Shown here: piece after piece, positions 14,677 to 23,545 of the stretch
Position numbering within the stretch: position 1 is the stretch's first letter
Layout of the letters: the number at the start of each line of letters is the position of its first letter
Notes under the pieces: model-generated
Seen by the model: only the letters and a program-made list of their open reading frames with translations
Told to the model about the DNA's origin: nothing
The model's database searches: none
Position numbers and translations under genes: made by a program
Virus record (IMG/VR): IMGVR_UViG_3300032334_001259
Coordinates: 124,001 to 188,000 of that record
Length of the DNA stretch: 64,000 nucleotides
Reading direction: 5' to 3' (one strand)

Positions 14677-17600
14677 TTACACCAATCGCTCAATACTAAT
14701 TAGGTTGTTGCTATAACCACTGCCAGTAATTGCACTGACACGATAAGCATTTGTTCCAATAGTTGCAGTAAACATAAACATGTCACCAGCAGTTCCACTT
14801 GGACTACCAATATTTGCATAAGTTGTGCTTAATGCCGTGTTACTACTACCACCAGTTGTTCCACCACCCAATCCAGATTGGAAAATATAAGTGTAAAGTG
14901 CTTGTGGTGTTCCGCTTAAACTACCAAGTTGTAATTGGTTAGCATTGCTACTACCATTGTTCAACCACTGAACCTTAATATTATCCATCGTAACAGCAGT
15001 ATTTTGTGCTACAATTGCAGAACTCTTACCAGTAACACTTGAACTATATAAATTACCACTAATTGTAGCATTAGTTCCAGTAAATGTATTAGCAGTAATA
15101 ACGTTTGCACCACTAATATTACCATAATTGGTTATTACAAAATTGCTTGCAACTACATAGCTTGCACCAGTGATGTTACCACCACTGCCTGTTGTTATAA
15201 GATAACCAGCAGTTATGTTACCAGTTGTAGATACGTTACCATAAGTTAAATTGTTCGTTACACTTATGTTAGCGGCATTGACATTTGCAGTTACGTTGAT
15301 ATTGCCAACATTAATATTACCAGTTGTGGTAATTGGGTTGGCATTGCTCATATAAATGTTACCATTTGGATACAACACCATCTGTGCGGCACCGTTGTTA
15401 TAGAAACTTAACGGTAGATATGTGCCAGTGCCGTTGATACCACTAACCAACTGAACATCTGTTGAACCATTTGTAGCAATAAGAATCTTACTTGCATTAG
15501 TTGGGTTAGTGCTATTAGCTGCTTGCCAACTTGCCGCAGTGCTACTACCACTTGGAAGAGCATAGATACCAGTGCTGCTATTAACATTAGCAGTTTGGAA
15601 CATTGTTCTATAAGCAACAGTAGAATTAGTAAAGTCACCAAGAATATAACTATTGCTTGGATGTGTTATGTTTCCAGTTACAGTAATATTACCAGCAGTT
15701 AAATTACCAGTATAAGTTGGCAAGTATGCAGCAACTTGCGTATTGCCATAAGTTCCACTTATGCCTGTCAGTATGCTTACACCATTGCTGTAAAGATAAC
15801 TGTTACCATAATGTGCGTTTGCAATCACATTGCCTGTGACAGAAATAGTTGAACTGATCAAGTTGCTGTTTAAGTAATATCCAACTTGTGTATTACCATA
15901 AGTTCCACCAATACCAGTGAGTATGCTTACACCATTGCTATAAAGGAAGCTGTTACCATAATGAGCGTTTGCAATAACGTTGCCTGTAACAGAAATGGTT
16001 GAACTGATCAAGTTGCTGTTTAAGTAATATCCAACTTGTGTATTACCATAAGTTCCACTTACACCAGAAAGTATTGATGTTCCATTTGGATATAGATAAT
16101 TTGGTGAGTAAATGTTGGATACAAAAGCATTACCAAAGAATGTGCTTATGCTACCAATATTGCCATAGTTGTTTGAACCACCATTGACAATTGCATTTTG
16201 CTGATTACCATAAACATTTAATATGTAGACACCAAATTGTCCACTAACTGAACCATAATTTAATACAGCATTTCTTGAACCATTTGGTGATAACAGATAA
16301 CCACTGCCACCAATAACAACACCAGCAAGGGCATCTACAGTTGTGTTAGGCGAAAGAACAAGATAACCAGCACTATAACTATCACTTATACTTGCACCAG
16401 TTGCTAATCTTATATTACCATTTCTCAAGATTTGAACATTACTTGTAGCAACAGTATTAGCAACATAATAAGCACTTACTTGTGTATTACCATATGTTGC
16501 AGGCAAACCTGTTAGATAATATCCATTACCTGTGTAGAATGATGCACCAACATTACCACTTGCTGTGATATTACCACTTGCAATAATACTGTTTGCATAT
16601 TCTGTATTATTGATAGTTTCATAGTTAAGTGTAGTAATATTACCAGTTACAAATAGATTACCATTTACAGTAATATTACCAGCACTTAAATTACCGCTAT
16701 AAGTTGGCAAGTATGTAGCAACGTTTGCATTGCTATAACTAAATGCACCGTTAATAACACCAATAAGTGTATTATTAATGCTTACAATATTACCTTCAAC
16801 GACTGTAACACGACCAGTTAATGATCCAAGATTAGCATTAGCTGCATTAATATTTGCAGTCATTGCATTGTTTAAGTTTGTTGCATAAGCGGTTACAGCA
16901 CTATTTGCAGTAACAATTGCGCTGTTTGCACCACTTACATTAGCATTTAATAATGCAATGAGATTTGCTTGTGTAGCAGCATTACTATAAAGAGTAGTAA
17001 TATCACTTGCTTGACTTGCGGCATTAGTTGTAAGTGTAGCAAGGTTACTTGCTTGTGTAGCGGCATTACTATAAAGAGTAGTAATATCACTTGCTTGGCT
17101 TGCAGCATTAGTGAATAATATATTCACGTTGCTTGCAATAGTTCCAGTGTTACTCTGTAGTGCGCTAATGTTAAGATTAGCGGCATTTAAGTTTGCATTT
17201 AATGTAGAGATTGAACTATTCGCAGCTTGAATCTGTTGTGTAGTAGCAAATCCAGTACCTGCTTGTATTTGCGCAATTTCACCTGCAAGATTTACAACAC
17301 TGTTGTTTAATGCAGTTATACTGTTTGCTTGAACGCCAGCATTAGAATAAAGTATAACAATATCGCTTGCCTGACTTGCGGCATTGCTTGACAATGTAGC
17401 AATTGCGCTGTTAGCTGCTGTAACATTAGCATTTATTGTAGTAATTGCACTATTAGCAGCAGTAACATTAGCATTGACTGTTGTAATAAGGTTTGCTTGC
17501 GTTGCCGCATTACTTGTTAATGTAGTGATTGCACTATTAGCTGCAGTGATGTTAGCATTTATAATTGTAATAAGGTTTGCTTGTGTTGCGGCATTACTTG

Positions 17601-19194
17601 TTAATGTAGTGATTGCACTATTTGCCGCAGTAACATTTGCATTAATGGTTGTAATAAGGTTTGCTTGTGTTGCCGCATTGCTATTAAGAGTTATAATTGT
17701 GCTATCAGTAGGTAGATATGCCGCAACATTAGCATTACTATATGTTGTTCCACCAGTGACTGCATTTCCTCCAACCAAAAGTGATCCATTTGCAACTTGA
17801 ACCGCAGTTCCAGCAATATAAATTGTATTATTGCTTACATACAAACTCTTCCATTGATTTGTTAGTGTTCCTAAACTATAAACAGCATTTGCTGTTGGTG
17901 ATATGTTACCAGTTATATTAACATCAGTTACAATACTATTTGTAAGATACGCTGCTACATTTGTATTGCTATAACTTGTTTGAACACCAGTTAGATAATA
18001 ACCATTACCTGTGTAAAATGTTGCACTAATATTACCGCTTGCAATAATACTATTAGCATATTCAGTTTTAGAAACAACTTCATAATTTGTAGTTACAATA
18101 TTACCAGTAACATTTAGATTACCAGAAATATTAACATTGCCACTTGCTGTAACATTTCCTGTTACAACTAATCCATTTCCACTTTTAAAACGACCTATTT
18201 CATTTGCAGCAGCATCGCCACCAATGGCAAATACAATATCTTTACCAGAAGTTAGGGTTGCAACAACAAGTTTACCACCTTCATTAAGAAGATAACCATC
18301 ATTTGGCCCATCAAGACCACCGCCACCACTAAATGTGCTACTGTTAATACCAAGATCAATATAATTAGTGCTATCACTACCATTATCTGCTGTTACAACA
18401 AGGTCGCCACTTGCACTGGTTCCATTGCTTTTGTTTTGTAATAATACTTGTGAATAACTGTTTACACTATCAACATAAGTCAAACGTGCATTTGCAGGAT
18501 TAAATGATGGTAATAACCCGATAGTTGTATAATTTGGAATGGTAAGATTATTGCCAGTAATATAAACATTACTATAAAATTGTGTGTATCCATTTACAGT
18601 ATTATAACCATTACCATAAGTTGTTAAACTTGTATTTCCATTTGAAGTTATATATAAAGCTGGAACACTACCAACATTTGAGTGAATTAAACCTGTTACA
18701 TTAGTTCCTAATCCACTAAATGTATAACCAGAAAAATTAGTAGTATTGATTTCTATAAAGCCATTAGCATAAATTGTGTCAGCACTTAAAGAACCATCTG
18801 TAGAAATACTTGTTTGGGCATAAAGTCTATCAGCGTTTAAACGATTTGCATTTATTCTTAAATTACCCCAATTATTATTTGTTTTAGTAGGATTAATCCA
18901 AGTATCAACGCTAATATTTCCAGAAAAGTTTGCATCTTTAATATAAGCACCAGCCCAAATATTAGATACATTTCCTAATGTAAAATAATTAGTAATACTT
19001 GGATTTACATTTGCATAAACATTACCTACCGCTGCATTAACATTGGTATATAGAATACGTTGACCACCTGCAGTAATGCCATCCATGACATATACATAAT
19101 CTGTTGCTTCATCAATGACTAATTCACCGTTGTGACCAACAAGATTACCTATTTCAAGAAAACTAATCTTACCAAAATAACGACGCAGTGCCAT
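14677..19194 (-). CDS. Long fibre protein (1505 aa) with Mtd_N-like N-terminus and coiled-coil stalk
   Basis: GELVIDEATDYVYVMDGITAGG (Mtd_N-like); 28-aa heptad repeats; many YSN.NVA.YL/YGNTQV repeats; TAAATA at 19215-19220. Confidence 0.85.
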   Translation of the reverse strand: MALRRYFGKISFLEIGNLVGHNGELVIDEATDYVYVMDGITAGGQRILYTNVNAAVGNVYANVNPSITNYFTLGNVSNIWAGAYIKDANFSGNISVDTWINPTKTNNNWGNLRINANRLNADRLYAQTSISTDGSLSADTIYANGFIEINTTNFSGYTFSGLGTNVTGLIHSNVGSVPALYITSNGNTSLTTYGNGYNTVNGYTQFYSNVYITGNNLTIPNYTTIGLLPSFNPANARLTYVDSVNSYSQVLLQNKSNGTSASGDLVVTADNGSDSTNYIDLGINSSTFSGGGGLDGPNDGYLLNEGGKLVVATLTSGKDIVFAIGGDAAANEIGRFKSGNGLVVTGNVTASGNVNISGNLNVTGNIVTTNYEVVSKTEYANSIIASGNISATFYTGNGYYLTGVQTSYSNTNVAAYLTNSIVTDVNITGNISPTANAVYSLGTLTNQWKSLYVSNNTIYIAGTAVQVANGSLLVGGNAVTGGTTYSNANVAAYLPTDSTIITLNSNAATQANLITTINANVTAANSAITTLTSNAATQANLITIINANITAANSAITTLTSNAATQANLITTVNANVTAANSAITTINANVTAANSAIATLSSNAASQASDIVILYSNAGVQANSITALNNSVVNLAGEIAQIQAGTGFATTQQIQAANSSISTLNANLNAANLNISALQSNTGTIASNVNILFTNAASQASDITTLYSNAATQASNLATLTTNAASQASDITTLYSNAATQANLIALLNANVSGANSAIVTANSAVTAYATNLNNAMTANINAANANLGSLTGRVTVVEGNIVSINNTLIGVINGAFSYSNANVATYLPTYSGNLSAGNITVNGNLFVTGNITTLNYETINNTEYANSIIASGNITASGNVGASFYTGNGYYLTGLPATYGNTQVSAYYVANTVATSNVQILRNGNIRLATGASISDSYSAGYLVLSPNTTVDALAGVVIGGSGYLLSPNGSRNAVLNYGSVSGQFGVYILNVYGNQQNAIVNGGSNNYGNIGSISTFFGNAFVSNIYSPNYLYPNGTSILSGVSGTYGNTQVGYYLNSNLISSTISVTGNVIANAHYGNSFLYSNGVSILTGIGGTYGNTQVGYYLNSNLISSTISVTGNVIANAHYGNSYLYSNGVSILTGISGTYGNTQVAAYLPTYTGNLTAGNITVTGNITHPSNSYILGDFTNSTVAYRTMFQTANVNSSTGIYALPSGSSTAASWQAANSTNPTNASKILIATNGSTDVQLVSGINGTGTYLPLSFYNNGAAQMVLYPNGNIYMSNANPITTTGNINVGNINVTANVNAANISVTNNLTYGNVSTTGNITAGYLITTGSGGNITGASYVVASNFVITNYGNISGANVITANTFTGTNATISGNLYSSSVTGKSSAIVAQNTAVTMDNIKVQWLNNGSSNANQLQLGSLSGTPQALYTYIFQSGLGGGTTGGSSNTALSTTYANIGSPSGTAGDMFMFTATIGTNAYRVSAITGSGYSNNLISIERLV
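15741..16058 (-). repeat. 150-bp tandem duplication in the fibre gene
   Basis: GTYGNTQVGYYLNSNLISSTISVTGNVIANAHYGNS.LYSNGVSILTGI occurs twice, with mostly synonymous differences. Confidence 0.9.
17380..17700 (-). repeat. 84-bp (28-aa) coiled-coil tandem repeats
   Basis: SNAATQANLITT(I/V)NANVTAANSAITTLT three times plus partial units. Confidence 0.9.
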
Positions 19195-19272
19195 GCTTAT
19201 ATCCTAATATCTTATATTTACCATAAAATGATTGTTTAAGAACCCATGAGATTTATGCATATCAGCCATTTA

Positions 19273-19327
19273 TGCACTGCAACATAATAAATATTGCACT
19301 GCACTAAATATATGCGTAAAATGCATA
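19273..19327 (+). promoter_or_regulatory. Regulatory region: two TGCACTGCA boxes, two TAAATA, TATGC-N7-GCATA inverted repeat
   Basis: TGCACTGCA at 19273 and 19295 (22 bp apart); TAAATA at 19288 and 19305; inverted repeat at 19311-19327. Confidence 0.55.
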
Positions 19328-19344
19328 GAACATGGAGATTTAAT

Positions 19345-19536
19345 ATGAAGACCATCGTAGAAAAGATAGCTAAGGTCATAGAATATAATCGTGAAGCAAT
19401 TGCACTTCGTCGCAAGTATTATAAAACCTATGATGAATTAAGCCGTTTAAACGATAGAGACTTAGCTGATATTGGTATCAATCGTGGTATGATTGAACAA
19501 ATTGCATTTGACCATACATATAATACTTCTCGCTAA
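19345..19536 (+). CDS. DUF1127 (YjiS-like) small protein, 63 aa
   Basis: RRKYYKTYDELSRLNDRDLADIGINRGMI is the DUF1127 signature; GGAG RBS at 19334-19337 supports ATG 19345. Confidence 0.9.
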   Translation: MKTIVEKIAKVIEYNREAIALRRKYYKTYDELSRLNDRDLADIGINRGMIEQIAFDHTYNTSR

Positions 19537-19561
19537 TATTTTTTTATATTTTTTGGTCAAT

Positions 19562-19588
19562 AAAAAAGGGGCTTTTCAGCCCCTTTTT
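19562..19588. terminator. Bidirectional intrinsic terminator between DUF1127 and major capsid genes
   Basis: AAAAAAGGGGCT-TTTC-AGCCCCTTTTT; GAAA loop on the minus strand. Confidence 0.92.
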
Positions 19589-19610
19589 CTTTTTCTGTAT
19601 TCCGTAAATC

Positions 19611-20810
19611 TTATTGGAATGAAAGGTTGCTAACGTTGATTTCACTTAGGTAGTCAGCTGCGTTACCGAAGCTGCTTGCTACGTTTGTGAGTTCTACATA
19701 ACCATAACGAGTCATGAAGCCAACTACTGGTTCGAATGTAGTTGGATCAAGGATAACACCACTGCTCATTAGAGGAATATATGGGCAATAGAACGCAGCT
19801 GCATCAGCTTCGCTAGTTCCCTTATAACCAACTAGAACAGGAATTGTGTCATCAGCATAGCTATCAACATATACACGCATTGCACCATTGAGAGTACCAA
19901 CGAACTTAGTGTTTGTTGGAGCTTCAAAAGCACCTTCTGTAGTACGTGCGAAAGCTGAAGTTGTTGCAGACTGAAGAACAGTCAATGCAGCACTTGATAC
20001 AACAGCCCAGTTACCTGCACCACGACGAGTGCGTTGTGCAATTAGGTTAGCAGCACGGTTGATAAGAACAGCTAGAGCAGCATGTTCGTCACCAACGAAT
20101 GTTGCAGTACCACTTACAGTAGCTTGGTTGTAAGTAAATTCTTGTGCAGCCAATGAACGTAGGCTGTAAAGGATTTCCTGATCAATTTCAGCAGTGATTT
20201 CTTGTGCGAGAGCAGCCATGATTTCTGCTTCAATGTCAAGACCATGCATAGCCTGTGCATCTTGAGCAGCTTCAAAAGTCCAGCGTGCGCTTAACTTACG
20301 AGTCTTTGCTTCAACAGGTTGCTTTAGGATTTGAACATTGAGCTTACGACCTGGTGTACCTTCCATAGCAGCAGTGAAACCAGCCTTACCGTCAGTGCTG
20401 TTAACACCTGGTGCAGTTCCAGAATAACCACTTGCAATCTTAAATGGTGAAAGTGCTTCATCATTAAGAGCAACGTCAGTACCAGCCTGACCGCTTGCAG
20501 TTGATGTGAATGTTTCAGCATAACGTACACGAAGAGTGTGGATCTGTGCAACAGGTCCAGTCATTGGTTGAACACCAACGATTTCGTTTGCAATAACAGT
20601 TGGCATAACACGGCGGATAACAGGGAGGATAACACGGTTAAGTGTTGCAATGTTACCAGCTGCAGTTGCACCAGCACTTGCGCTTTCAGCAAGATACTTC
20701 TTAGTATTTTCGAGCACCATGCTCATTGTTGTACGACGATTACCGCTTAGACCTTCCAACAGGGCTGTCTTGGTTTCGTCCCAACGACTTTCAATTAATT
20801 CTTGTGACAT
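19611..20810 (-). CDS. gp23: Major capsid protein (T4 gp23 family)
   Basis: VIRRVMP..IA.EIVGVQPMTGP, AKTRKLSARWT.EAAQD, EI..EIDQEI, FYCPYIPL, TRYG. Confidence 0.97.
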   Translation of the reverse strand: MSQELIESRWDETKTALLEGLSGNRRTTMSMVLENTKKYLAESASAGATAAGNIATLNRVILPVIRRVMPTVIANEIVGVQPMTGPVAQIHTLRVRYAETFTSTASGQAGTDVALNDEALSPFKIASGYSGTAPGVNSTDGKAGFTAAMEGTPGRKLNVQILKQPVEAKTRKLSARWTFEAAQDAQAMHGLDIEAEIMAALAQEITAEIDQEILYSLRSLAAQEFTYNQATVSGTATFVGDEHAALAVLINRAANLIAQRTRRGAGNWAVVSSAALTVLQSATTSAFARTTEGAFEAPTNTKFVGTLNGAMRVYVDSYADDTIPVLVGYKGTSEADAAAFYCPYIPLMSSGVILDPTTFEPVVGFMTRYGYVELTNVASSFGNAADYLSEINVSNLSFQ

Positions 20811-20834
20811 AGGGTCTTCTCCAAATTTGTATTA

Positions 20835-21932
20835 TCACTTTAGACCAGCAAGACGCTTCATTTCAATTATGTTTGAAGTTTCTTTCTGTTCAGTTTTAAC
20901 AGCACGATCACCTGTAACTTCTTTCTTGCTTTCAACGATAGTTTGCTTTGTAGCTTCTACCTTTGGAGCATTGCCTTCCATTACTGGGTTTAAGTACTTT
21001 TTGTATGCTGCGTCGAGTTTTTCTGTTGGGACTGATTCCAGCAGTTGTGACATCACAGCGGCTTTGTCTTTGCTAAGAGGACTTAGCAATTCGTTGAGTT
21101 TACCGTTACGAGCAATGCTTTCATTGATTTTACGGATTTCTACTTCTTTTGCCTTAACTTCAGTCAACGCACGTTCTTCGGCATCACGTGATTCACTGAT
21201 TTGACGAGCCATTAGCTCGATCTTACCAGTAAGTTTCTTGATGTCTGCACGTTCGTTAAGGTAGCTTGCGCCAAACTCAGTTGCAAAGGCTTCAAAAATC
21301 TTACGACCGAAGTTGTTTTCCTTGGCTTCCTGAATATCTGTTTTGAGTTGGTTTAATTCTGTACGTAGATGATTTGTAACTGTGCCTTCTACAAGTGCAC
21401 TTGCTTTTTTTACGAAACTATCACGAAGTGATTCAAGTTTCTTACGACCTTCGGTTACAACTGCAACCTTAGTGCGAGCAAGATCCATCTTGTCTGCTGC
21501 AAATTCTGCAATCTCAGCTTGTAAGTTTTCAGCAACGAATGCTTCTAACTTACTGATTGCATTTTGCATATTGGCACGATCACCACGAAGTTCAGCAACT
21601 TCACTTGCAAGTGATTCACTTAGATAAGCATCAAAATTACGAGCCTTATCCATCATTTGCTTTGTGAATTTTACACGGTCTTCGCTAACCATTTCACGTT
21701 CAGCACGAATTTTTGACAATTCGTCTGTAAGTGATTCGTTAACCATCTTGTCCAGAGCCTCAACCATATTAGCACGGTCGTGTTCATAACGACTAGCCAT
21801 TTCCTCACGAATTTCATCACGAATCTGTCCACGTGCTTCTTCAAGTTTCACATTCCATGCTTCTTCAAGTTGCTTACGTGTATCTTCGTTCAGAAGTCCG
21901 CTTTCTAGTAATGGTTTTAGAGCTTCGAACAT
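20835..21932 (-). CDS. gp22: Prohead core scaffold protein (gp22-like)
   Basis: Glu/Lys-rich helical protein between protease and capsid genes; FGRKIFEAF motif. Confidence 0.8.
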   Translation of the reverse strand: MFEALKPLLESGLLNEDTRKQLEEAWNVKLEEARGQIRDEIREEMASRYEHDRANMVEALDKMVNESLTDELSKIRAEREMVSEDRVKFTKQMMDKARNFDAYLSESLASEVAELRGDRANMQNAISKLEAFVAENLQAEIAEFAADKMDLARTKVAVVTEGRKKLESLRDSFVKKASALVEGTVTNHLRTELNQLKTDIQEAKENNFGRKIFEAFATEFGASYLNERADIKKLTGKIELMARQISESRDAEERALTEVKAKEVEIRKINESIARNGKLNELLSPLSKDKAAVMSQLLESVPTEKLDAAYKKYLNPVMEGNAPKVEATKQTIVESKKEVTGDRAVKTEQKETSNIIEMKRLAGLK

Positions 21933-21947
21933 TAATTTCTCCTGAAC

Positions 21948-22571
21948 TTATATTTTTAATTCATCAATAAATTTAGCAAGTTCTTGCTTAAGATATTTTT
22001 GAACTCGTTGATCTTGATTTAAATCTTTAGCCATTTCCAAAATGCGATGACCACCGTTCATATTCATTAGTCCTTCATAGACTGCTGTTGGGTAGGCATT
22101 AGGTGCACTTGGCTGTGCTACAATATCAACAGTAACGATATCAAAATCGCTTACTGCACCGTCGTTTTCGTTTACATTACCACTTCCACGACTACTTACT
22201 CCTAGTTTGACACCACTTTCTAACATGGTGCGAACTAAATTGCCCATTGGAGTAGGCAAAATCTTCATCTTACCATAACCGTTCGGTCCATCTAACCACA
22301 TTTCTGTAATCATATGACTTACACGATCAAGGTTAATGCGTAAGTTTGTTGGGTGATCTACTTCACCCAACACACTATAACCTGTTCTAATTTGCTTATT
22401 GAGTGTTTCAATAGCACGACTAATTTCATTAACGGGATAAACACGTTGATTTGCGTTCTTTACACCACCTTGGATGCAAATGCCCTTCATATAAAGGTTT
22501 TTGCCTTCATCAGTTGATGTTTCCATCTTTGCTTGGTCGTAACTAAGATTTTCAATAAGCAAATTATTCAT
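21948..22571 (-). CDS. gp21: Prohead protease (gp21)
   Basis: KNANQRVYP, LGEVDHP, VSHMI, GVSSRGSG, DIVAQPSAP. Confidence 0.96.
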   Translation of the reverse strand: MNNLLIENLSYDQAKMETSTDEGKNLYMKGICIQGGVKNANQRVYPVNEISRAIETLNKQIRTGYSVLGEVDHPTNLRINLDRVSHMITEMWLDGPNGYGKMKILPTPMGNLVRTMLESGVKLGVSSRGSGNVNENDGAVSDFDIVTVDIVAQPSAPNAYPTAVYEGLMNMNGGHRILEMAKDLNQDQRVQKYLKQELAKFIDELKI

Positions 22572-22585
22572 AACTTTTCTTTACC

Positions 22586-23443
22586 TTACTTTGGAAGATT
22601 ACTCTTCTTGTTTACATTTGGACCACCGCCAGTTGCAAACTTGCCTTCTGCACTTTGTGGCTTCTTGGCATTTGAGAAACCTTTCTTGCCAGCGTCACCA
22701 CCTGGTGCATTAAGGAACTTACCACTGTGTGGGAAATTACCTGACTTTGGACTAGTATATTGCTTGCCATTTGGATCTACTTGTTCACTCTTTTGAGCAA
22801 TATTCTTTGCAGTGCCACCCATGTCGTTCTTGCCAGCAACAACGCTCTTTGGATTTGTTTCACCAGTTTTTACGAATTCACCAGTGCCAGCACCTACTGT
22901 AGCACCATTTGGCTTTGCGCCAAACTCGCCCTTGTATGGTTCGCCAACTTTTTCAACATATTCACGAACTACGCCTTCTTCAGCGTGTTCTGGTTCTTCT
23001 TTTTCTTGTGCCATTAGCTTTTCAAATTCAGCCTTAAGGTCGTCAAGAGCATCTTCAAGGTCCATTACACGATCTTCAACGTCACCTGCTTCACCAGCTT
23101 CGTCGCCCATGTCCATGTCATCACTGTCCATGCCCATGTCATCGTCTGCACCGTCCATACCGTCATGATCTGCTTCAATATCGTGCATCATGTCATCGGT
23201 TTGGTCCATGCTCATGTCGTCACCAGCTTCTTCCATGCCGAAGTTTTCTTCAACTGAATCTTCTTCAACTGCTTCTTCGTCCATGTCTTCTGCTTCATCA
23301 ACGCCTTCTTCCATTTCTTCTGCAACGATTTCGTTGTAGATGTCACGGCTTTTTGCTACAACAAGGTTATGAAATAATTCTTTTGCCTTGTCTTGTTCAT
23401 CATTAATGATGTATTCTATAAGTTGTTCGTACTGACTACGCAT
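22586..23443 (-). CDS. Highly acidic prohead core/internal protein (gp67/68 position)
   Basis: Asp/Glu/Met-rich tract; position between portal and protease; TAAATA at 23479-23484. Confidence 0.65.
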   Translation of the reverse strand: MRSQYEQLIEYIINDEQDKAKELFHNLVVAKSRDIYNEIVAEEMEEGVDEAEDMDEEAVEEDSVEENFGMEEAGDDMSMDQTDDMMHDIEADHDGMDGADDDMGMDSDDMDMGDEAGEAGDVEDRVMDLEDALDDLKAEFEKLMAQEKEEPEHAEEGVVREYVEKVGEPYKGEFGAKPNGATVGAGTGEFVKTGETNPKSVVAGKNDMGGTAKNIAQKSEQVDPNGKQYTSPKSGNFPHSGKFLNAPGGDAGKKGFSNAKKPQSAEGKFATGGGPNVNKKSNLPK

Positions 23444-23545
23444 ATAAAAAACTCCTGTGGAATTATATCCTGTGATTATATTTAAACTATGGTTATAATA
23501 AGTGCCTGAAATAGCCGTATTTTTGAATTTTTTGTGAAAAATAAA

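Follow-up and report, generated by a model that had tools for sequence, protein, structure and literature searches.

A DUF1127 gene beside the capsid gene of an uncultured freshwater jumbo phage lies behind boxes that match the PhaR binding site and is probably tied to the stored carbon of its host

The window analysed here is a stretch of 64,000 nucleotides, bases 124001-188000 of the 338,435-bp virus record IMGVR_UViG_3300032334_001259, which carries direct terminal repeats and has a G+C content of about 35%. Its protease, scaffold and capsid module is of the T4 gp21/gp22/gp23 type, and the capsid protein (Pfam Gp23, E 6.8e-98) shares 68.6% amino acid identity with Pseudomonas phage PA5oct, 67.6% with Sinorhizobium phage Phosso, 66.9% with a Vibrio jumbo phage and about 61% with the RaK2/GAP32/CBB group. 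Near-identical or related DNA occurs in freshwater, lake, pond, river and freshwater-sediment metagenomes from 16 studies, and we therefore regard the record as an uncultured freshwater jumbo phage. Between a fibre-like gene and the capsid gene, a small DUF1127 gene lies alone on the plus strand, and the features of this region are as follows (L numbers denote loci and lineages of related phage, or of bacteria where stated).

14677-19194, minus strand: long fibre-like structural gene (1505 aa), transcribed divergently from the DUF1127 gene; its N-terminus is conserved in relatives.
19214-19220, minus strand: TAAATAT, late-type promoter core of the fibre gene, 26 nt upstream of the fibre ATG and inside an almost invariant block, which is invariant in alignment A2.
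19256-19264, no strand: box 0, TGCATATCA, a degenerate PhaR-like box 17 bp before box 1; it is a perfect box (TGCAATGCA) in L023 and reads TGCATAGCA in L009, L010 and L013.
19273-19284, no strand: box 1, TGCACTGCA (19273-19281) plus ACA.
19288-19294, plus strand: first TAAATAT, not conserved in relatives.
19295-19303, no strand: box 2, TGCACTGCA, overlapping a -35-like TTGCAC (19294-19299).
19305-19311, plus strand: second TAAATAT, inferred phage late promoter core, 40 nt before the ATG.
19311-19327, plus strand: inverted repeat TATGC-N7-GCATA, whose loop holds a -10-like TAAAAT (19317-19322), 17 bp after TTGCAC.
19334-19337, plus strand: Shine-Dalgarno GGAG, 7 nt before the start codon; TGGAGA is invariant in alignment A2 of the intergenic region.
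19345-19536, plus strand: DUF1127 gene, 63 aa.
19563-19588, no strand: intrinsic terminator hairpin with T-runs on both sides, between the convergent DUF1127 and capsid genes.
19611-20810, minus strand: major capsid protein, T4 gp23 family.

The observation made in the initial annotation is thus confirmed, since the two boxes (22 bp apart), both TAAATA motifs, the inverted repeat and the open frame ending at 19536 were all found where it had placed them. The real start is ATG 19345, whereas the longer TTG-started ORF (19294) reads through the promoter. The protein matches Pfam PF06568 over profile positions 2-37 of 37 (E 5.9e-12, 45.6 bits against a gathering score of 23.3), and a six-frame search of the genome gave the same result and showed it to be the only copy. 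In a crude ORF map it is the only plus-strand ORF between 2850 and 27965. The terminator was called in a terminator scan and folds at -16.6 kcal/mol (z -4.0), and its stem is kept while the loop changes in L004 and L005.

The gene also fits the character of a moron, an extra gene with its own promoter region and terminator between conserved genes. Tblastn of the protein against 50,697 phage records gave no match, and hence no clue to the host, and the annotation of phage CBB shows no such gene beside its capsid gene, so that it is an insertion relative to cultured relatives. Within its own clade, however, it is old, as its base composition does not differ from that of the phage. Sixteen metagenomic orthologues at 63-100% identity share an invariant C-terminal half, and every contig long enough to judge has the order fibre-like gene (-), DUF1127 (+), capsid (-). 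Further IMG/VR contigs with capsids 88-94% identical have a DUF1127 gene at the same place, although that protein is only 36-49% identical.

Regarding the phage's own promoters, TAAATA is by far the most enriched upstream hexamer of the genome, being present in 84 of 196 upstream regions (14.6x). TAAATAT is depleted in the genome as a whole (85 on both strands against about 190 expected), and 61 of those 85 lie within 80 nt upstream of a same-strand ATG, mostly at 10-11 or about 25 nt, with the virion genes of the window among the genes concerned. By analogy with T4 (TATAAATA), we infer that this motif is the late promoter core. CTTGACA is the second enriched motif and marks sigma70-type promoters. 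Of the two copies upstream of the DUF1127 gene, only the second is conserved, its TAAATA core being kept in all 11 lineages examined (invariant in alignment A2 and nearly invariant in a second alignment, A6). The -35-like TTGCAC and the -10-like TAAAAT are also conserved, as TTGC/TTGA and TAnnAT, but a consensus scan did not call this sigma70 promoter, which therefore rests on conservation alone. Sigma54 and MotA-box readings of TTGCA were rejected, since there is no GG at -24 and the alignments gave no support.

The initial annotation had likened the boxes to PhaR sites of the loose form TGC-N3-GCA. On its own this pattern is not enriched in the genome (61 against 100 expected), and on that test alone the motif would fail. 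The literature, nevertheless, gives a sharper definition of the site of PhaR, the bacterial sensor of stored carbon (PHB). PhaR of S. meliloti recognises the palindrome WNWDDNYGCRNYGCRNHHWNW, with core YGCRNYGCR, in two copies flanking the -35 of phaP1 and phaP2 (PMC12542648); footprints in B. diazoefficiens give the consensus TGCRNYGCASMA, with sites 6 bp either side of, or over, the -35 (PMC6201568); and R. eutropha gives YTKNTGCRNYGCANMAR (PMC12849132). Both window boxes fit the 9-mer exactly, and the 12-mer of box 1 (TGCACTGCAACA) fits the B. diazoefficiens consensus at 11 of 12 positions and differs from the listed bsr4236 site (TGCATTGCAACA) only at the free middle base. YGCRNYGCR boxes are depleted genome-wide (28 against 50 +/- 7 expected), and seven or eight of them lie in the 6% of the genome that is intergenic. 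Only two close pairs exist in 338 kb, this one and one at another promoter, whereas shuffles gave a mean of 0.22 pairs and two or more pairs in 2% of runs. It is thus only the R-N-Y form specific to PhaR, its intergenic placement and its pairing that carry signal.

Conservation points in the same direction. In the alignments and box scans of the intergenic region from 11 lineages, every lineage keeps at least one perfect box within about 100 nt of the start codon, and the TGC and GCA arms stay fixed while the middle triplet changes (ACT, AGT, AGC and GAT at box 1; ACT, GCC, ATT and GTT at box 2; AAT at box 0), all of these fitting R-N-Y, with box 1 of L028 as the one exception. Box 1 is kept as a perfect box in 9 of 11 lineages and is degenerate in L028 and L006, while box 2 is perfect in the window's subclade and in L006 but degenerate in L009-L018. 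The CA two bases after box 1 is also invariant, and in L018 the 12-mer is TGCAGTGCAGCA, identical to the B. diazoefficiens phaZ3 and nifR sites (PMC6201568). Over 15 viral DUF1127 loci, perfect boxes occur at 1.65 per kb in the 330 nt around the gene start against 0.10 per kb elsewhere. This is the pattern of a protein-binding site under selection in AT-rich DNA.

The inverted repeat, in contrast, finds no such support. The initial annotation had proposed LysR-type control here, and LysR-family control of DUF1127 genes is reported for Brucella VtlR (PMC12595884); the repeat is present and contains a T-N11-A core, and control by an LsrB/VtlR-like regulator, as for DUF1127 genes of Agrobacterium and Brucella, would be conceivable. 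However, it is intact in only 4 of 11 lineages (window/L003, L021, L026 and L028), degraded in L004 and absent in L023, L006 and L009-L018, and what is conserved inside it is the -10-like TAnnAT. Two copies in the genome against 0.9 expected is not significant, its RNA hairpin is weak (-5.1 kcal/mol, z -1.9), Rfam found nothing in the window, and nothing ties the repeat to LsrB or VtlR. We consider this reading very unlikely.

A scan of the whole phage for further boxes and phasin genes, which had been suggested beforehand as a check, led to a second gene. The only other close pair in the genome is at 319,911/319,931 on the minus strand (locus L087), where a TTGACA-N17-TATAAATAT promoter has one box in its spacer and the other just after the -10, as an inverted repeat. 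The pair is identical in L091 and L092, and is kept as one perfect and one single-mismatch box in a lineage whose protein is only 55% identical. The gene behind it (L087:1529-1897, minus strand, 123 aa, downstream of a phage metK) gives weak but repeated phasin signals. These are Pfam Phasin_2 (PF09361), E 0.017; TIGR01841 phasin, E 0.021; Phasin_2 as the only family that recurs among distant homologues (6 of 56, best 1.2e-4) found with a profile search of 1.8 billion proteins; hhalign against seven bona fide alphaproteobacterial phasins at probability 70%, E 4e-5, over the AKSL..AQT.YTK core; and language-model neighbours that are all PHA-granule families, at scores below 0.9 and so leads only. 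The gene nevertheless fails the Phasin_2 gathering score (15.7 against 24.9 bits), and this sub-threshold hit is the only Phasin_2 hit in the phage, so that we call it phasin-like and not a phasin. Its AlphaFold model has three helices and a pLDDT of 77.5, and neither Foldseek against the PDB (nothing with E at or below 0.001) nor a shape search of the ESM Atlas gave a hit, which is uninformative for an all-helical protein. A cluster look-up of the distant homologues returned only 'hypothetical protein', and tblastn against the 50,697 phage records gave no match.

In two other phage lineages (L093/L094 and L107), a 52-aa DUF1127 gene lies directly upstream of the phasin-like gene, in the order HSP20, DUF1127, short upstream ORF (MWPYT...), phasin-like gene. 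The two genes are therefore either adjacent, there without any boxes at all, or 176 kb apart, each with a box pair, which argues that they work together.

The same boxes were also found on the bacterial side. Of ten true phasin genes in five named alphaproteobacterial genomes, seven have box pairs 18-31 bp apart just upstream. Among 57 bacterial DUF1127 loci found with the phage family's patterns, nearly all of them Alphaproteobacteria, boxes occur at 2.8 per kb upstream against 1.3 per kb elsewhere, and pairs at 0.32 against 0.06 per kb. In Sulfitobacter (L035) and an uncultured alphaproteobacterium (L039), the arrangement box, CATAAATA, box lies just before the DUF1127 start codon, which is the layout seen in the phage, and Bradyrhizobium-type and related genes carry TATGT-TGCATYGCAC about 70 nt upstream. 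All five tested genomes with such box-bearing DUF1127 genes encode PhaR. In B. diazoefficiens USDA110, the small ORFs bsr4236, bsr4726 and bsr5273 are strongly repressed by PhaR. We found no paper linking DUF1127 to PhaR.

The boxes might also be real operators for a different DNA-binding protein, either a phage-encoded regulator or another host factor, in which case the likeness to PhaR sites would be coincidental and regulation would have nothing to do with PHB. A short quasi-palindrome built on TGCA could serve many dimeric regulators, single boxes also lie beside late-type promoters of unrelated phage genes (genome 19710 and 81279), and the lineage L093/L107 has the gene pair without boxes. 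Against this stand the same boxes before DUF1127 and phasin genes in bacterial chromosomes that encode PhaR, the 12-mers that equal footprinted PhaR sites, as in L018, the phasin-like gene behind the only other pair in the genome, and the absence of a PHB_acc_N domain, and hence of an own PhaR, from the phage. We regard this alternative as unlikely. It is also possible, though less likely still, that the boxes are unused relics carried in with genes captured from a bacterium, and that the gene is simply a late gene driven by TAAATAT. The module of box, CATAAATA, box and DUF1127 exists in bacteria and could have been captured whole, TAAATAT is the best-conserved element, and box 2 has decayed in some lineages. 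Yet the boxes persist in an intergenic region of a 35% G+C genome where the DUF1127 protein itself has diverged to 36-49% identity, their middle triplets drift almost only within R-N-Y, the motif is otherwise avoided in the genome, and a second gene keeps a pair across lineages whose proteins are 55% identical.

Taken together, we consider it more likely than not, with moderate confidence, that the gene is a moron of a jumbo phage related to RaK2, PA5oct and Phosso that is gated by host PhaR, that is, by PHB state. In this view, the promoter region would combine the phage's own late-type TAAATAT element, overlapping a sigma70-like TTGCAC-N17-TAAAAT, with two or three copies of a putative operator of PhaR, the host PHB-responsive repressor, one copy overlapping the -35-like element and another lying 22 bp upstream, the layout seen at bacterial phasin promoters, although this placement depends on promoters that we only inferred. 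PhaR represses phasin promoters when no PHB is present and is pulled onto nascent granules when PHB is made (PMC12542648, PMC12849132). By inference, in a host without PHB granules free PhaR would occupy the boxes and hold the gene down, whereas in a host that stores PHB (carbon excess, for example under phosphate limitation) PhaR would be drawn onto the granules and the gene released; the phasin-like gene, with the same box pair across its -35/-10 region, would be co-regulated. If transcription is driven mainly by a phage late sigma factor, however, repression by PhaR is only assumed. The product would then act as a small regulator of host physiology, by analogy with characterised DUF1127 proteins, which bind the phosphate sensor kinase PhoR and restrain phosphate uptake (PMC12501420) or bind RNA and affect sRNA maturation (PMC8034643). 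Low phosphate is also a PHB-permissive condition in S. meliloti, so that a carbon-storage signal and a phosphate-signalling effector fit together, even though restraint of phosphate uptake is not an obvious benefit for a phage. What our analysis establishes is the identity of the gene, its synteny, the motif statistics, the conservation and the occurrence of the same boxes before bacterial DUF1127 and phasin genes, while the binding of PhaR, its presence and PHB synthesis in the host, the expression of the gene, the promoters used, the direction of regulation, and the target of the protein with its binding of PhoR or RNA all remain inferences. Contigs of four freshwater metatranscriptome assemblies cover the capsid, scaffold and protease genes but not 19000-19603, which is only weak evidence against expression, since contigs only show presence.

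The interpretation offered in the initial annotation is accordingly supported in part. Its main line, a DUF1127 moron beside the capsid gene with PhaR-type boxes and a phage late-type promoter, holds as far as computation can take it, whereas the LysR element is unsupported, only one of the two TAAATA motifs is conserved, and the boxes cannot by themselves point to the host class, because the betaproteobacterium R. eutropha uses the same TGCRNYGCA core (PMC12849132). An alphaproteobacterial host is somewhat more likely than not but unproven, as this leaning rests on DUF1127 similarity from a pattern-biased scan and on the bacterial modules above. The low G+C is typical of this phage group whatever the host, and a search of 401 Pseudomonadota genomes, for which no taxonomy was shown, was of no use for this question.

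A bolder reading, which we put forward only tentatively and hold to be rather less likely than not, is that a widespread clade of freshwater jumbo phages carries a two-gene module, a DUF1127 small protein and a phasin-like protein, wired to the host's PHB sensor PhaR, so that the phage reads the host's carbon-storage (and indirectly phosphate) state and acts on it. The same comparison implies that DUF1127 small proteins belong to the PhaR regulon of many Alphaproteobacteria, and a further possibility is that hundreds of replicating phage genomes titrate PhaR and so derepress the host's PHB regulon. If PhaR gating is true, it would provide a concrete, testable case of a virus sensing stored carbon in its host, a physiological context for DUF1127 proteins, whose function is still debated between PhoR binding and RNA binding, and a host clue, namely a PHB-making proteobacterium, for an abundant group of uncultured freshwater jumbo phages. 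On the bacterial side, PhaR-type boxes before DUF1127 genes in Rhodobacterales, Bradyrhizobium-like and Acetobacteraceae genomes would extend the PhaR regulon.

Phages place host-derived genes under host nutrient regulators such as Pho, NtcA, LexA and Fur, as exemplified by the Pho boxes before cyanophage pstS/phoA and the NtcA sites in cyanophages. The logic proposed here is the same, a host nutrient-status regulator gating a host-derived phage gene, but the regulator would be PhaR and the signal PHB storage, for which we found no report in any phage, nor any report of a phage phasin-like gene. Compared with T4-type late promoters, which are read by gp55 and gp33, the TAAATA core likewise lies 10-40 nt before the start codons of virion genes, is depleted elsewhere and has no -35 element, but the consensus here is nTAAATAT, and many copies sit 10-11 nt before the ATG, so that the leaders are very short. 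With the small DUF1127 proteins (A. tumefaciens SDPs, E. coli and Salmonella YjiS, R. sphaeroides CcaF1), the protein shares the Pfam domain, the size and the conserved LSxLxDRxLxDIG core, yet it is phage-encoded, has a family-specific C-terminal tail (IAFDHTYNTSR) and is at most about 43% identical over its full length to bacterial proteins. Finally, with the PhaR (AniA) operators at phasin promoters of Alpha- and Betaproteobacteria (S. meliloti phaP1/phaP2, B. diazoefficiens phaP1/phaP4, R. eutropha phaP1), the putative operators share the core TGC-RNY-GCA, the 3' ACA/GCA tail, the two copies about 20 bp apart and, given the inferred promoters, the placement over or beside the -35/-10 elements, whereas here they lie in a virulent-type jumbo phage genome of 35% G+C, are interleaved with a phage late-type promoter and precede a DUF1127 gene rather than a phasin gene.

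A 123-aa phasin-like gene was found outside the window, downstream of a phage metK, and its promoter, TTGACA-N17-TATAAATAT, is bracketed by an inverted pair of PhaR-type boxes. The features of this locus (L087, a stretch of the same phage genome, G000:C1) are as follows:
L087:1529-1897, minus strand (= G000:C1:319525-319896), the phasin-like gene
L087:1912-1920, PhaR-type box
L087:1932-1940, PhaR-type box

In relatives (L091, L093 and L107), the first 17 codons (MWPYT...) form a separate upstream ORF whose stop overlaps the main start codon. Moreover, in other phage lineages (L093:1710-2809 and L107:1218-2309), the HSP20 gene, a 52-aa DUF1127 gene and the phasin-like gene are adjacent to one another and lie next to a family-B DNA polymerase gene, although no PhaR-type boxes occur in these loci.

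The HSP20 gene of our phage, likewise outside the window, is itself preceded by a ROSE_3 RNA thermometer, which narrowly passed the Rfam gathering score (RF02523, 43.5 bits against 43, E 2.5e-6) and which lies behind a CTTGACA promoter:
L108:1918-1979, minus strand (= about G000:C1:329,920-329,985), ROSE_3 RNA thermometer
A similar CCTTGCTTAATAGGAGG element is present at the HSP20 genes of L093 and L107, but it was not called by Rfam.

Single PhaR-type boxes were also observed next to late-type promoters at two further sites of the phage genome outside the window:
G000:C1:19710 (locus L088), single PhaR-type box
G000:C1:81279 (locus L089), single PhaR-type box
Here, TATAAATAC-TT-TGCACTGCA precedes a 65-aa membrane-like ORF, while TGCAATGCAACATAAAATAAAAT, closely resembling the context of box 1 upstream of the window's DUF1127 gene, lies between a signal-peptide beta-barrel-like ORF (214 aa, without any Pfam hit) and a glucosaminidase-domain gene. 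As for the late-type promoters themselves, both within window 2826-46174 and genome-wide, many of the TAAATAT elements lie only 10-11 nt before the ATG (TAAATATTnnnATG), which implies leaderless or nearly leaderless late mRNAs without a Shine-Dalgarno sequence.

Within the window, the fibre-like gene encodes a protein full of near-identical internal repeats (SNAATQANLIT.. and GTYGNTQV..):
window 14677-19194, minus strand, 1505-aa fibre-like protein
The N-terminal 48 residues of this protein are conserved, whereas the rest varies between relatives. In addition, freshwater and riverine metatranscriptome assemblies contain many contigs 88-99% identical to the capsid, scaffold and protease genes (window 19604-23500), and relatives of this phage were therefore active, or at least present, in those samples.

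On the bacterial side, the DUF1127 genes of several Alphaproteobacteria (loci L035, L039, L060, L062, L065, L078 and L080) carry PhaR-type boxes upstream, and some of them are followed by a second DUF1127 gene. The small, strongly PhaR-repressed ORFs of B. diazoefficiens (bsr4236, bsr4726 and bsr5273) may also carry the DUF1127 domain. The boxes upstream of the alphaproteobacterial genes suggest, from sequence alone, that DUF1127 proteins belong to the PhaR regulon.
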